The position numbers were made by a program, and so were the translations under genes. The notes below the pieces were generated by a model. That model was not told the DNA's origin, made no database searches, and was given only the letters and a program-made list of their open reading frames with translations. This document shows, one piece after another, positions 56,812-64,000 of a DNA stretch of 64,000 nucleotides. Each line of letters opens with the position of its first letter. The stretch's first letter is position 1. Origin of the DNA: Pavona decussata (lineage: Eukaryota); contig CDRNST010000178.1 of assembly GCA_977016875.1 (NCBI GenBank), forward strand, positions 868,001 to 932,000. The letters are read 5' to 3'.

Positions 56812-59800
56812 ATGTCGGCGGGCCAAACTGATAGGGAATTTCGTGCTGTGAGCATAACAGAGTCTTCTCGTAATTTGGTATGTTCATGTTTAAGGTATTT
56901 TTTAGGTCGGTCAGTTGATTTCGGTTTTGCTTGGAACTTGTTAACCACTTTTGGTGAGCGCCAAGCCTCGAAGCGTTGATCATTTCAGTTAAGCTTGAAT
57001 TGATGTTTTTAAAACGAAAATCAAAAGAGCAAAGGACTTGTAATCAAGCTTAAAAAGACGAAGAACACTCCATGTTGATTGGTTTTCTTTAAACTGAAGA
57101 TAAATTAAGTAAGCAAAGCGTTTTTGAATATCACTTATTAGGCGTTCACTGGAAACTGGTATTCTTGTGAAAAATTCAAACATTCGATCATATCAGCTCC
57201 AAATTCCGGATTCTTGTCTCCTCGTCATGAAAATTTTGATCGCTTTTTGAACAACAGCAAAAGAATACTGATAATTTTGTTATTGCAACGCCTCGAATTT
57301 CGATTTGGGTCTATCCACCTAAGGTGCAAGATTTTCGTTTTACATCCGCCATCTCTTACGTTTTTCTTTTCTTTCCATATATTATCAGTATTTCTAGCCG
57401 GGAGGTCCGAAAAAAAATCCACTTAACCTCTGTTCAAAGGGGCTAATACTAATGAGCTGAGTCACAAAAAAATTTGGTCAACCTTTTATCAAATCAGAAG
57501 CGTATTTAATTCAATACTCCATTCAATGTCCGTTGAAATAAGGACCTTTGTACTCCAAAATAGGCTAACTTGTTTCTTCGTTTTATGAAATGTCTGAATT
57601 TTTTTCAGTTCAAGACAGCAGCCCTTGACCCGTCTCCTATTTGGGACGGTTCTGCCTCCAAGACAGAAAGACTTTCAGCCTTAAATTTATTTCACTGAAA
57701 ATATCTTTAATAAGCATTTTTTATCAAATCCAAATAATGCACTGACCAATTCTAAACTTCTACACCCCCGTCATCGCCCCCCCTCCCCCTCCACCCGCCC
57801 TACCCTGGCATTTGAACTTTTGAAAATTGACCTGTTCAAATTTCTGACCTGCAAGACCAAACACCATTCAAAATACCCTACCCCAGCACCAAATTGGACA
57901 ATCAAATGCCCCTACCAAAAAACAAACGTTCCAATTATCGGTATACACTACATTTAAATTATCCAATTTTTTATACATACCATTGAAAACACTACAAAGT
58001 GTTTGGAGGCCTCTTGAACTCATCCGTAGATCAGTAACCACACATGTTCCGCTGGACAAGAAGAAAGGTGTTAACTGGAATTTTTTTCTAAAAAAGGTCA
58101 AACTGCCCACCCCAACCAGGTAAAGTTCAAATCCCCCACCTTGTGGATGGTCTTTCACGTCAAGGTGGTCAAATGCCCAGCTGGTTAGCATGTTCTTTGA
58201 ACTAGTATTTAGTTTAAATAAGAACTGCATAATATCGTTGGCAGAGTCTTTCCAAACTTATCAAGGAAGAATCAAAGTGATTCTGCTACCAAGGTAACTA
58301 CATACAGGCCAGAGAGGAGAATTGAAATCTTGATATCAGGTTTGAATGTTGTTTTCTTTTGTTCTTTTGACAGCATCATAACTTCTTAAGCTCACCCGTA
58401 CCCTTTGAGTGTCCTGATACAATTCTGTCGCCTCCACTGTCATCATCAACCTCACACACAGTGCGACTGGAACCTGACAACAGAGTGTTTACACCCATCC
58501 CTTGCCAGCCCAGGGTATCGACTCCATATCCTGTTATTGATTCTGTCACTTCAGCTAAAGGTATCTTTACAGACTTGAAGACCAAGTTGTGCTAACCCAT
58601 TTTACATCAAGTATGAATCATTTGGGACAAAAGCTAAACCAACGATATTATTTCCATCGACAGAATACTTTTCAATTGAGGGTCAAATTTCAATGTATTT
58701 TCATGTTTGCTTTGATTTTCCTTTACTACACACTGTCAAATATAGTTAAAAAGACTTACATCGCTTTGTTAACCAAATATATTAAAAGTAAAACCAAATA
58801 TACCATTTAAGTAAAAAATTCAGGGCAAAAGAACTGGAAGAACTTTTTAGAAAATATTTATTAATTCTCAATAACAAAATTGATTTTGAATCTTTTTCTA
58901 ACCAAAGTTTTATTATTTTTCTGTGTGTTGTTTATTTCTATGCATAACCCTGCAGATTGGCCTGGACTATCCCCAGAAAACAGACTTTTTCCTTCATCTT
59001 GGGGATTTGAGCCAATACTTCATATTGGCCAGCAGTTCCAAGGTGGAGTGTTGCCAATGGCAGCAAGTAACTCACAGACTGTTCATCATTATTCATTCCC
59101 ACAAGCTTGGCATCATGCTGTTACATCACCACAGAACTTCAGGTAGAAGTAATAATTCTCCATGTATTAATTATAATATACTAACTTTTATAAGTCTTGC
59201 TAACTTTTATTATAAAGTTACACAAACTTTTGGCTCAGCAGAATATGGTTAAGGGTATCAAGCTCCGGATGCTACACTCCCACCTCAATTTCACCAATAT
59301 ATGGTAACCTATTCACAACAAATGATACAGTGTATGAATCTCCAAGTTTTATTCTGACTAGAAATTAGCTTACAAGAGTCCATTGGCCTTCCTTTCATTC
59401 GCGCATTGGAGAAGACCAAGCTGTGCTCATGGAAAGAGGGCCAAGATGTCTGAGACACAACTGTAGATTTGACAATACTGACTTGCTCCAAATTAATTTT
59501 AATGTACTACTGATTAAATTTATGTAGTGAAAGTACTTCAGGTGACTGCAGTAAAATAAGTACAAATTCATTTGCAAATGATCATATTTGAAAAGGCCTT
59601 CAAAAGTGAAACCTCTGTCAAATAGGAGTATAGGCTGTCTTGGTACTTGGTACAATTTTTACTCTGTTCCATGCATGATGGCATTGCACCAGTGTGTTTT
59701 TCAATGTGGTATTATCCACAATGCCACGCTCTCAAATAAACCCTGCACATTAACATCTCTGTAGTTTGTCCCCAAATTACCCATGGATCAGTATTTGAAA

Positions 59801-62800
59801 CATAAATAGCAATTCCTTGCTGGTTAGAATTTGTCAGGATGGTATAGAAAGGTTTACTTGAGGATCTACCCTTGAAATTGCATGCCAAACTCAAAAGTTT
59901 TTTTTTTAATTTCAGCAGCTATGTACAAAAGCCTGTGTCTAGTGTTGTATTTAGTGTGAATTGTACAAATTATGCAGTAGAGTGAGTTTCTGAATTTGTA
60001 ACTGTGCACTTCTCAAAAGGCAGGTCCAGTGAGTTTATATTTACAGTAATTATAGAGATGGCTCAATAGGGTTTTGTCCCCTACCCACTGAAGACAGAAT
60101 GCCAGATTTAAAGAAAGGTTTTGATATTATTTTGTTGTGTTCCAGTGCACTTGTTTTACTCTCACAATGAAATATTCACCCATGCAAATGTACAAATGGG
60201 TTCTGGAAAATTGTTGGGATTTGTTTGGCGCAGAAAACTGTTGTACATATATAGTGCACAGGCCTAGAATCCCATGCATGGGGGTGGGAGATGTTAATAA
60301 CACCCCTTGTAATTTCATGCAAAGGCAAGATGATTTCTGTGACTGATGACTTTGTGGTTACATGTTGTTTTTGTTGTAGTGGTCATGGTTTTCACAGCAA
60401 TGACTTTTGGTATCCAGGAGATTCTTCACTTGTAGAAGGGGTAATGATTGTATATGCCACATATTTATGATTGTTATATTGTTTTTGTGAGGTTTTGCAT
60501 GCCAATTTTACACAATTATACTTGTCTAACAATTCAGTCAGTTACTTGAAGAATGGATATTTATTACTTTTTCATTTAATATGATAGTTTGGAAGTGTTG
60601 ATGAAAGAGGCAATATTATTGAACAAGATTCCAAAGTAACATCAAGTACAGAATTAGGTGAGAGTAAAAATTATCCCTTACTTATGGAATGCCAACATGA
60701 GGATCTAATAAATTGTATGTCTGCATGAACCTGAAGTTGATATGAGCCCAAAGTGTTGCAAGTGAACTTTTTAGTTTTTCAGGTTACAGGTACATAAATT
60801 TATTACCTAAAATTAATTTTGTTTTGCTTATTTTTAGAGTCGCCATGGAAACCCGAGTTGGGACTTCCTCCTGTTGCTGAATTGTTGAATTCATCAGTAA
60901 GAGAACAATGTCTGATTATTTCTACCTGCATGACATTAAAGTAGTGAAGGCCCAGAGTTTAAGGTTGGAGATCAAATAAAGCAGGAATCACCATTCAGAA
61001 GTTGAATACAGAATTTCAAGTTGCATGGTGCTTATCCTGGATTGTGCAGTTCCAGAAAATATCCATACTCTTCCTCACCCCATCCGGTCCCCTACTGAAG
61101 GGTTTTAGTTTTGCACACCATTTCCCCCAGGAAATTCCAGTTTAGCTTCATACTTTGCTTCTAAAATTTTGGCTTTTAAGACTCCCCCCCTCCCCATAGG
61201 AGTTTCTGATGACCTTCTATGGGGTGGGTATGGATTTTTTTCTGAAGCTGAACAAAATTTAGCATACTCGTGCTTCAAACAGCCAGGTGAACAATATTGT
61301 TGTGAGAGAAGTTGCATTGTAGCATGCCTTGTTTGAGGAAAAAGCTTCACTTCTTGGTTAATTGAACCCTTGCCCTTCCAAATACACAACAACTAATTAA
61401 GGCATAACTACAAACCCTCTACCCTCCAAAGATCAGGAGGCTTCATATAATTAATAGTATAATAACCTTTTAGTATTTACAAAACATGGCAAAACATTTT
61501 ACAGTTTCTCCTGAAAATTATAATTAGATTTATGGAAAGTCATGAAAACTCTTCATTTTTAGAATGGAAATATAAAGTTGGAAAAGATAAGTCCAGTGGA
61601 GATAACTTTAGCAGATGAGACGTATCAGCTTAGTACCATGCCATCCAGTGCATTGTGTGTTAAGCCAAAACAATCCATTGGAAGTTCTACTCTCAGTGGT
61701 AAAGGTAGTGATCTCATCATTTTGCACTTTTATGCAGTGTCATAAACTACTAACAGTACTAGTATTATATAAACTGGAATAGATCATACTCTGGACATAG
61801 TTTGGACAAAGAAAAAAAATGATTAAGTTGCAGTCAGAAGTAGACATACGTCTAAAAAAGCTTTGACCTTGAAACCTTGAGGGACAATGTTTATGAAACT
61901 TGTCCAAACCTTTCGTTAGCGTTGACTTCATAAAAACAAAAATAATAAGCCAAACAGCTATCAGCAGTGGAAGAACAGTTTGGAATACAGTTTTTTTGGC
62001 AGCTCCAAGTTTGAGTTCAATGAAGAGGTGTTTGTGGCATCTACTCCTCTTAGAGAGAGATCAGGCCTAAGTAAGTCAGTCAATCAGTTTGTTGGTCAGT
62101 CAATCATCGCATCTGTCAATCAGTCTGTCTGTCGATGATCCCTAACAAGGGATCGGCCATGCACAGGTAGTTAAGGCTGTTTCCATACATGTAGGGCCCC
62201 TAGTGCATGTACAGTACTGTTTGCAGCATCTTGATTCACAGTCAGTCAGTCCATCTTTGTACCCTTTGTTTGCTATATCAAACATGATTCATATTTATTA
62301 AGTTTTTTTTTCACCAGATGTGAGGACTCAGACACCGTGGAAACTAAAGAAGTTTAAATCAACTCCAATAGTTCAAAGTCAAAACAATCAAAAAGAAAAG
62401 CCACGGAAAACAGTGAATCCACATGTTTACTCAAAGCAGAAGAAAGTGTAAGTGAGTTTATAGTCATTCATAACATCATGGTGGCTTTTTTGCTTTCAAG
62501 GCACCTGATGACTTATGGAGAAAAAATTAAGGAATTTGTAGAAATGCATTCTCCCCTGTATAAGATTTATGAGTTTGTAACTAACTACAACAGAGGCTGT
62601 GGTTGTGGCCTGGGGAAGGAGGGAGGTATTCCTCAAAATTTTGGTAGGGGTGTGGTCCACACCCCCTTGAATAACTTGACTGTCCATTTTCAGACCTGAT
62701 TTCAAAATCGAAACCCATTTTCAGACCAGACCACACTGGCTGAAAAACCATAGTTATGTCCACTGGCCCATGCACACCTAAAGCTTATGCAGAGGATTAA

Positions 62801-64000
62801 GCTTTGGGAGGAGGTGAGGGGGGTCTGGGAGATAGAAATTGGGTCCAAGATTTTGTTATATTTATAAGTCCAAAATTGGGTACAGTTTTTGTTTGTGGTT
62901 GAATTAAAATAGAGTATAATATGATTGGGTTTGATCTCTTCATCTTCAAACTAAAAAGAGAGAAACAAAAATTAAGTAAAGTTACATGAAATTCAGGTCT
63001 GAAAACTGGTATCAATTTTGGAAGCCTGCAGAGATACGACTCCTCCAGTACATAAGCCTAAATACTTTATTTCATAATTTTTCTGTTACAGTTTAAGTCG
63101 ACTCTAAAATAACAAGCTTTACTATTTGCAAGTGCTACTTAAAGTTATTCATTCTGAACACATTTCATCACCCTCATGTATGTGAAGTTGCCTTAAAGCA
63201 TCATTTTTTAGAGTTTTTCTGCCAAGACTGTCATTATTTAAAGTTATCCACCCTGAACACATTACATCACTGTCATGTAATGTGAAGTTGCCTTAAAGAG
63301 TTGTTCTGCCAAGACATGGACACTTATACTGTCATTATTAACTGCAATGGTTTTCATCGATTTGTAGGCAAAGAGAAAGAGAAAAAGCTATTAGAGACAA
63401 ACTAAAGTATCTAAGCACAATTCTTCCATTGGCTCACTTAAGAAACAACCGGCCATCAAGGAAGGAAATTCTTGAAACTGCAATTAGTCGCATCATGCAA
63501 CTACAGGAAGATATTCGAGAGGCGTACCTCCAAAATGGGTTGAAGACAGAGGATTTAAAGGCTGCATTGCAAGGCAACATGGTGTTCAATTTGAGTACTA
63601 GCAGCTGTGTTCCTGACACTGATCGAGAAAATGGCGTACCCCTGATCTCAGGTGAAGATAATAGCCTTCCCAGCACTCCAGAGGTGACAGAAGGTGAAGA
63701 TTTGCGCATTACCTCAGCATCACCCACCTCGGAATCCAGCAGCCAAGAATCCGAGGAATCAGAGATTGCTCTGCATAGTTCAAAACCCGAAAACACTATA
63801 AAACACGTGAAGAGACCAATGAATGCATTCATTTTGTTTAGCAAGAACCACCGCACATTTTTCAAGCATTTGTATCCTGGGAGAGATAATCGTAAGATTA
63901 GCATACTTCTTGCTGAAAAGTGGCGAAATATGAGACCAGAGGAAAAGGAGCCGTATAAAAGGGAAGCTAAAGAGTTGATGAGGCGAACTAAGGAATCCCA
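56812..64000 (+). CDS. bHLH + HMG-box transcription-factor-like protein; partial, runs off the right edge, 5' exon structure unresolved
   Basis: Exons 58245-58293, 58374-58560, 58956-59142, 60380-60440, 60588-60657, 60838-60896, 61563-61698 (or 61704), 62318-62447 and 63368->64000 splice in frame. The candidate first exon 56812-56877 and a possible exon ~62003-62070 are not phase-resolved. The last exon is open for 633 nt: QREREKAIRDKLKYLSTILP...RPSRKEILETAISRIMQLQ (HLH) and HVKRPMNAFILFSKNHRTFFKHLYPGRDNRKISILLAEKWRNMRPEEKEPYKREAKEL (HMG box from ~63804). Confidence 0.82.

Follow-up and report, generated by a model that had tools for sequence, protein, structure and literature searches.

A protein that combines a basic helix-loop-helix (bHLH) domain with an HMG box has been described so far only in the case of MEIOSIN (BHMG1), the initiator of meiosis in vertebrates. 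Mouse MEIOSIN has 589 residues, with the bHLH within residues 10-70 and the HMG box within residues 484-534, and in the MEIOSIN-STRA8 pair the bHLH is used mainly for partner binding (PMC13637641). Orthologues are known in vertebrates only, the published comparison stopping at hagfish and leaving more distant species unsurveyed (Genes Dev 2026, PMC13637641), while many orphan bHLH genes have been reported in cnidarians (PMC1828162). Here we analyze a gene of the coral Pavona decussata that begins in a stretch of 64,000 nucleotides (the window; positions 868001-932000 of its contig in a genome of 602 Mb) and runs off its end. A first-pass annotation, made from the letters of the window, had proposed that positions 62318-64000 encode a bHLH followed by an HMG box. 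We consider it probable that this single-copy, transcribed gene of 13 exons encodes a nuclear transcription factor of ~680 residues that belongs to an undescribed, Cnidaria-wide family, in which the HLH would mainly dimerise and the HMG box would read DNA. The order of its parts is an N-terminal region, an atypical bHLH, an acidic linker, an HMG box and a C-terminal CW finger.

The gene is real, spliced and transcribed, and is found in the complementary DNA (cDNA) of two studies. Logan contigs of four sequencing runs were aligned to window positions 58301-64300. Two spliced cDNA contigs, one of 2015 bases from run X1 and one of 1114 bases from run X4, come from different studies, and all of their joints are of the GT..AG type. 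They contain the junction 62447→63368, which had been predicted from the letters and is present in both contigs, and six junctions upstream of it. Run X15 covered the whole stretch evenly and represents genomic DNA. The RNA run X8, a metatranscriptome, gave only repeat matches on the aligned stretch and thus no expression support.

The gene model was assembled from the cDNA joints, from tblastn searches with the Montipora and Oculina RefSeq models and from a check of borders and reading frame in each exon. On the + strand it extends from window position 56812 to about 69469, ~5.5 kb past the window end (positions above 64000 are contig positions minus 868000). Exons 1-13 amount to 2043 coding bases, or 680 codons, with a frame that is open in every exon, and the gene is present in one copy in the P. 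decussata genome. Its features are as follows.

56812..56877, + strand: exon 1, with the start codon (ATG at 56812) and MSAGQTDREFRAVSITESSRNL; GT donor at 56878
58374..58560, + strand: exon 2, conserved N-terminal region …FECPDTILSPPLSS…PYPVIDSV…; X1 and X4 cDNA, AG/GT borders, open frame
58956..59142, + strand: exon 3, conserved motif SSWGFEP…HHYSFPQAWHHAVTSPQNF; cDNA joint 58560→58956, GT..AG
60380..60440, + strand: exon 4 (…NDFWYPGDSSLVEG); cDNA joints on both sides, GT..AG, and homology
60588..60657, + strand: exon 5 (FGSVDERGNIIEQDSKVTSSTEL); cDNA joints, GT..AG, and homology
60838..60896, + strand: exon 6, motif SPWKPELGLPPVAELLNSS; cDNA joints, GT..AG, and tblastn with the family models P0046 and P0037
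61563..61704, + strand: exon 7; cDNA joints, GT..AG, and homology
62318..62447, + strand: exon 8, with TQTPWKLKK, a stretch rich in Lys and the beginning of the basic region (…HVYSKQKK); cDNA joints 61704→62318 and 62447→63368
63368..64096, + strand: exon 9, with the rest of the basic region, the HLH, the acidic Ser-rich linker and the HMG box; a single cDNA exon of 729 bases
63372..63533, + strand: helix 1-loop-helix 2, within exon 9; positions 10-53 of the Pfam HLH profile
63804..about 64010, + strand: HMG box, within exon 9; Pfam positions 1-62 of 69 inside the window, the rest past its end
66691-66717, + strand: exon 10, 27 bases; cDNA
67192-67256, + strand: exon 11; cDNA runs into 67192 onward
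68124-68424, + strand: exon 12, first half of the CW finger; homology-supported junction
69451-69469, + strand: exon 13, YCCEH-stop; homology-supported junction

The two exons first spotted correspond to exons 8 and 9, and the peptides quoted for them are indeed encoded there: positions 62320-62448 give VRTQTPWKLKKFKSTPIVQSQNNQKEKPRKTVNPHVYSKQKKV, and positions 63369-64000 give QREREKAIRDKLKYLSTILP...HVKRPMNAFILFSKNHR...YPGRDNRKISILLAEKW. The exon at 62318, the first of those two, is the eighth of the gene, the start codon lying at 56812. Extending the gene past 64000, as the first-pass annotation had advised, placed the end of exon 9 at 64096 and followed the gene to the CW finger. The sense open reading frame (ORF) was missing from the ORF list, as had been remarked, because it runs off the window end, and the list shows an antisense ORF at 63434-63904. 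Calling the gene unannotated was correct for this window but not for its orthologues, for which RefSeq models exist under the name 'uncharacterized protein'. At the 5′ side, the loose end of the X1 cDNA contig before 58373 matches the last 30 bases of exon 1, which agrees with how the Oculina, Desmophyllum and Montipora models begin, and exon 8 shares 56-63% identity with its counterparts in Montipora and Oculina.

Two features of the database proteins were examined as possible ends of the protein and rejected. A 'GYR-stop' C-terminus, at which most database ORFs stop, is read-through into the intron: its TAG is intronic and lies behind the GT donor that follows 64096, and the cDNA continues into the 27-base exon. 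The Met-starts of single-exon database proteins (MAYRQKERE… and others) result from read-through at the acceptor site, where the conserved Arg is encoded across AG|G.

Domain scores for the window gene were taken on single exons. Exon 9 contains, as had been proposed, an HLH followed by an HMG box, which is the MEIOSIN-type order within one protein. Against the Pfam HLH profile (PF00010), exon 9 alone scored 17.7 bits (E 0.003, positions 10-53 of 53; cut-off 20.7), a score that is below the cut-off; the nine missing profile positions sit in the upstream exon. Orthologues exceed the cut-off, with 38.6 bits in Nematostella, 25.7 in P0014 and 24.1 in Oculina. A profile of the family HLH matched almost nothing but solved bHLH chains, 73 in all, including TAL1 (1.2e-6) and MITF (4e-6), and the helix 1-loop-helix 2 profile places the family in the bHLH superfamily. 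AlphaFold2, run on exon 9 with an alignment of 25 rows, predicted helices at residues 2-18 and 31-55 with a loop between them, at a predicted local distance difference test score (pLDDT) of about 90.

The basic region departs from the canonical one that reads E-boxes through Glu9 and Arg13. In alignments to MITF and TAL1 and in an alignment of the family's own members, the Glu9 position is Gln in the anthozoan members and Glu in Sanderia, and the position at which group B bHLH proteins have Arg13 is Glu in all family members. In the P. decussata gene a phase-2 intron interrupts the basic region directly ahead of the codon for the Glu9 position, and a single exon encodes the HLH, the linker and the HMG box. 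With Gln and Glu at these two positions, the HLH therefore points to a mainly pairing role. Consistent with such a role, a modelled homodimer of the peptide encoded by 63369-63590 reached an ipSAE score of 0.33, versus 0.01 for the best control; among proteins of known structure, 21 of 30 solved as one-chain pairs and none of 23 solved as single chains attained the mark applied to this score. At least 75% of the contacts agreed between model runs, the pLDDT of the partner was at least 63, and the chains formed the classic symmetric helix 1/helix 2 bundle. What this predicted complex shows is a likeness to known bHLH dimers, not binding.

The part of exon 9 inside the window scored 58.6 bits against Pfam HMG_box (PF00505; cut-off 25.4), and the complete boxes of orthologues scored 61-66 bits (Nematostella 63.9, Oculina 66.3). 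AlphaFold2 placed the three HMG helices at residues 153-210 with a pLDDT above 90, and gave the acidic, Ser-rich linker of ~75 residues that precedes them (residues 71-144) a pLDDT under 50, as for a disordered segment. With its KRPMNAF-type first strand, its Pfam match and its three-helix fold, the box belongs to the sequence-specific class to which it had been assigned. Likewise borne out was the proposal that the box is most like that of HBP1, its best named relative. Among solved structures, human HBP1 matched best (2e6o, 66.9 bits, 2.2e-17), followed by capicua (6jrp, 61.5 bits) and by SOX proteins, at 51.6 bits or less. Some 30 of the fetched proteins carry an AXH domain and are HBP1, most of them coming from the best 150 matches and a few from cluster look-ups, and among the matches listed HBP1 proteins were the best bilaterian single-box ones, at 46-53% identity.

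To place the box we inferred a maximum-likelihood tree of 52 HMG boxes. The anthozoan family (support 90/85), HBP1 (100/100) and capicua-like proteins (100/99) each formed a clade, and the three grouped together (94/88) apart from the SOX-like boxes, with an inner order that is unsettled. The approximately unbiased (AU) test did not reject a clade of the family with HBP1 (p 0.265), and the sister relation is likewise without support. Since the HBP1 clade is fully supported without it, the family does not fall inside HBP1; judged by its sequence, the family HMG box represents an old lineage of its own within the HBP1/capicua supergroup. Three proteins considered as family candidates were rejected, P0143 and P0162 being SoxD-type and P0119 grouping with Sox-like boxes in the tree.

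The P. decussata genome also contains an HBP1 of its own. Contig C76 carries, at positions 2495181-2506222 (G000, loci L025 and L027), a canonical coral HBP1 with a C2H2 finger, an IATSPQSPL motif, an AXH domain and an HMG box. AXH was found in this genome on contigs C62 and C76 only, the complete HBP1 lying on C76, and Pfam detected no AXH domain in members of the bHLH-HMG family. An intron interrupts the HMG box of the HBP1 gene on C76 after …PGKDNR and is missing from the bHLH-HMG gene.

The C-terminal part of the gene was not foreseen by the first-pass annotation's two-domain layout. In exon 12 lies the N-terminal half of a CW-type zinc finger (…DEWVQCENCKNWHMLPDDVTSASLPDKW), which scored 24.7 bits against Pfam zf-CW (PF07496; positions 1-25 of 47, cut-off 27.5). 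The finger is complete in Nematostella (57.2 bits), and about 30 positions are matched in each of Montipora (34.5 bits) and Oculina (33.3 bits); the Montipora protein ends as that of P. decussata does, in YCCEH-stop. At the other end of the protein, the N-terminal ~250 residues are about 72% conserved among corals and matched no Pfam family. Exon 2 is 72% identical to the Oculina XP model P0203 and exon 3 is 73% identical to Oculina and Desmophyllum, neither matching a Pfam family when taken singly. The motifs SPWKP..LPP…F/L and TQT.W+LK are common to corals and Nematostella, and the exon 6 motif SPWKPELGLPPVAELLNSS has the Nematostella counterpart SPWKPITPLPPLTDFL.

Members of the family were found across Cnidaria. 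A word search returned 36 relatives, nearly all of them single-exon calls on coral contigs, and orthologues from many corals are 55-97% identical. Full-length models, obtained by an exhaustive search and cluster look-ups, are Montipora foliosa XP_068688975.1 (638 residues), Oculina patagonica LOC144666560 (711 residues; HLH 24.1, HMG 66.3 and zf-CW 33.3 bits), Desmophyllum pertusum OS493_019701 and Nematostella vectensis LOC116619804 (XP_048587154.1, 817 residues; HLH 38.6, HMG 63.9 and zf-CW 57.2 bits). A divergent lineage, P0047, has an HLH/HMG exon followed 1.7 kb downstream by a CW exon. A family-HLH hidden Markov model, applied to the best 150 matches of an exhaustive search, also recovered a protein of 700 residues from the scyphozoan Sanderia malayensis, with HLH and HMG and with no CW visible. 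The occurrence of the family in Sanderia as well as in anthozoans implies that it had arisen by the time Anthozoa and Medusozoa diverged. Databases label these models 'uncharacterized', 'hypothetical' or 'BHLH domain-containing', and in the literature searched neither the Nematostella and Montipora accessions nor a bHLH-HMG-CW architecture was mentioned. The first-pass annotation had named three findings that would speak against it: no HLH profile match, no transcripts, or an already described family with this architecture. The profile match (63372..63533 in exon 9) and the transcripts are both present, and no described family of this kind was found.

Two further models were noted next to these orthologues. 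At a second Desmophyllum pertusum locus (MU826834.1, L005:9938-11698), the 200-residue protein P0035, which GenBank names 'HMG box-containing protein 1', keeps the N-terminal WHHAVTPQNF exon, the linker and the HMG box and lacks the HLH; the locus is a partial duplicate of the family gene, or else its gene model is incomplete. In Montipora foliosa, a paralogue on an unplaced 1.8-Mb contig (P0204, a second model, 660 residues) has KRKRTSRKRQL in place of the basic region and an altered CW motif, WVHCDKCKECQVL, and may be a diverging or decaying copy.

Two introns of the P. decussata gene contain repeats. A very high-copy dispersed repeat with many variable joints and loose ends occupies window positions 60900-61300 in intron 6; its depth reaches ~93,000 in the DNA run, versus ~31 in the flanks, and is extreme in every run, and it gave no match in Rfam at E values up to 0.1. 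In intron 9, at 64190-64330 on the window scale, a G-rich unit of ~30 bases, GGGGGCCACGAGAAAAAAAATGGCACTAAAGG, is repeated three times in tandem and followed by a G run, and its depth in the DNA run is likewise very high.

How the gene is to be explained depends mainly on its relation to HBP1 and to MEIOSIN. It is hardly credible that it is a chance ORF, a pseudogene or a mis-spliced fragment: the HLH match in the window is, taken alone, under the Pfam cut-off, but the transcripts are canonically spliced in two studies, the frame is open across 13 exons, many corals have orthologues that are 55-97% identical and both domains are modelled with high-confidence folds. We also regard it as quite improbable that the gene is a diverged HBP1 or an HBP1 duplicate, with its AXH replaced by an HLH and a function as a cell-cycle repressor. 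In favor of this reading, the HMG box matches human HBP1 best among solved structures, the best bilaterian single-box matches are HBP1 proteins, GenBank gives the Desmophyllum family fragment an HBP1-like name ('HMG box-containing protein 1') and the AU test leaves a clade of the family and HBP1 standing. By contrast, the gene has no AXH anywhere, the HBP1 clade excludes the family with full support, and the canonical HBP1 on C76 has the intron after DNR that the bHLH-HMG gene lacks. To go by the sequences, then, the gene is not HBP1, because its HMG box lies outside the HBP1 clade and the coral has a separate, canonical HBP1. The bHLH-HBP1 fusion that the first-pass annotation offered as one of two origins is for the same reasons too narrow a description, as the box is not nested in HBP1 and the protein has a CW finger and an N-terminal region besides.

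The other origin that had been offered was kinship with MEIOSIN. That the family is the cnidarian orthologue of MEIOSIN, so that a bHLH-HMG factor taking germ cells from mitosis into meiosis would predate the cnidarian-bilaterian split, with the CW finger and the N-terminal region disappearing later in vertebrates, strikes us as rather unlikely, while an independent combination of bHLH, HMG and CW in the cnidarian lineage, serving some other role in development or cell state, comes close to an even prospect and is somewhat likelier than descent with MEIOSIN. The two share a rare domain order, and the atypical basic region would suit a bHLH that binds a partner, as in MEIOSIN-STRA8 (PMC13637641), whose survey left non-vertebrates aside. 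In the ESM Atlas, the named clusters nearest to exon 9 were a chordate HMG cluster (0.85), a mollusc HMG+HLH cluster (0.84) and a chordate HMG+HLH cluster named 'meiosis initiator protein' (0.83), the last two outranking an HBP1-like cluster (0.78). All of these scores are below the mark of 0.9, with 154-163 shared features as against 170 typical for the same family, and proteins with the same two domains look alike to the model regardless of kinship; the HLH part alone retrieved generic HLH clusters only. The mollusc cluster comprises 57 proteins of ~660 residues, automatically named 'Sex-determining region Y protein', with HMG_box in all and HLH in 42%, and bHLH-HMG proteins may thus occur in protostomes as well. 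Sequence searches recovered the family from cnidarians only, as an independent origin would predict, and none of the best 150 matches of the exhaustive search carried a Pfam HLH outside Cnidaria, although this negative is weak against MEIOSIN, given that Sanderia, a true member, ranks only about 130th in that search. A profile word search returned corals only, and a word search with the HMG region scored 8 candidates, which is too narrow for distant bilaterian kin. The place of the HMG box in a clade of its own, next to those of HBP1 and capicua, the CW finger and the long conserved N-terminal region (neither reported for MEIOSIN), the different spacing of the domains and the many orphan bHLH genes of cnidarians (PMC1828162) all favor a separate origin. 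However, the rare bHLH-HMG pairing also appears in the mollusc and chordate Atlas clusters, which would fit one old origin as well as it would repeated shuffling.

Under the interpretation that we prefer, that of a nuclear transcription factor from an undescribed cnidarian family, the HLH would pair two chains, or one chain with another HLH partner, and the HMG boxes would chiefly recognise and bend DNA. We propose that, with Gln and Glu at the positions of the E-box-reading Glu9 and Arg13, DNA recognition therefore falls chiefly to the HMG box. The acidic Ser-rich linker would act as a flexible spacer and is probably phosphorylatable, and a complete CW finger may attach the protein to methylated histone H3 tails. 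Several observations weigh against this interpretation. Taken as single exons, the HLH and CW pieces of the window gene fall short of the Pfam cut-offs; the two final splice junctions are supported by homology only; the homodimer score barely reaches its mark and may reflect a memory of the abundant solved bHLH dimers; and stony corals have a CW finger that breaks off at about position 30 of 47 (…KWYCCEH-stop), so that it may not read histones. DNA binding and dimerisation are predicted as the most likely activities of the protein, histone binding is a possible one where the finger is complete, and we infer them rather than show them.

If the family is orthologous to MEIOSIN, then, together with the mollusc HLH+HMG proteins, it would make the starter of meiosis an ancient germline regulator of animals that once carried a chromatin-reading CW finger. 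If it is unrelated, it would still represent an undescribed class of animal transcription factors in which a module for dimerisation is combined with a DNA-bending box and a finger of the histone-reader type. Nematostella LOC116619804 provides a member in a model organism and makes it directly testable whether the meiosis trigger predates vertebrates.

Four known systems resemble this family in part. With the CW readers ZCWPW1, MORC3/4 and LSD2 it shares a C-terminal W-x-Q-C-x2-C-x-K-W…W-x-C pattern and a Pfam zf-CW match, complete in Nematostella; by contrast, the coral finger stops after about 30 of 47 positions, and histone reading is only putative. To our knowledge, which does not come from a systematic search, no other CW protein has a bHLH or an HMG box. 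Capicua (CIC) is the second-best solved class for the HMG box and falls in the same supergroup, but forms its own clade (100/99), and the family lacks the C1 motif and has an entirely different architecture. Of the proteins that are named or solved, HBP1 has the most similar HMG box (KRPMNAF…YPG+DNR.IS..L…W) and belongs to the same 94/88 supergroup, whereas its AXH domain and N-terminal C2H2 finger are missing from the family, its clade is its own and the coral has it as a separate gene. MEIOSIN, compared by its published layout, differs in spacing, the mouse protein having its bHLH at the very N-terminus and its HMG box ~410 residues on, whereas the cnidarian proteins have ~250 residues before the HLH and ~90 between the two domains, and a CW zinc finger is added in the cnidarian family. 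It resembles the family in its single chain with long disordered regions, in which a bHLH precedes an HMG box, and in a bHLH that plausibly serves more for partner binding than for E-box reading (PMC13637641).

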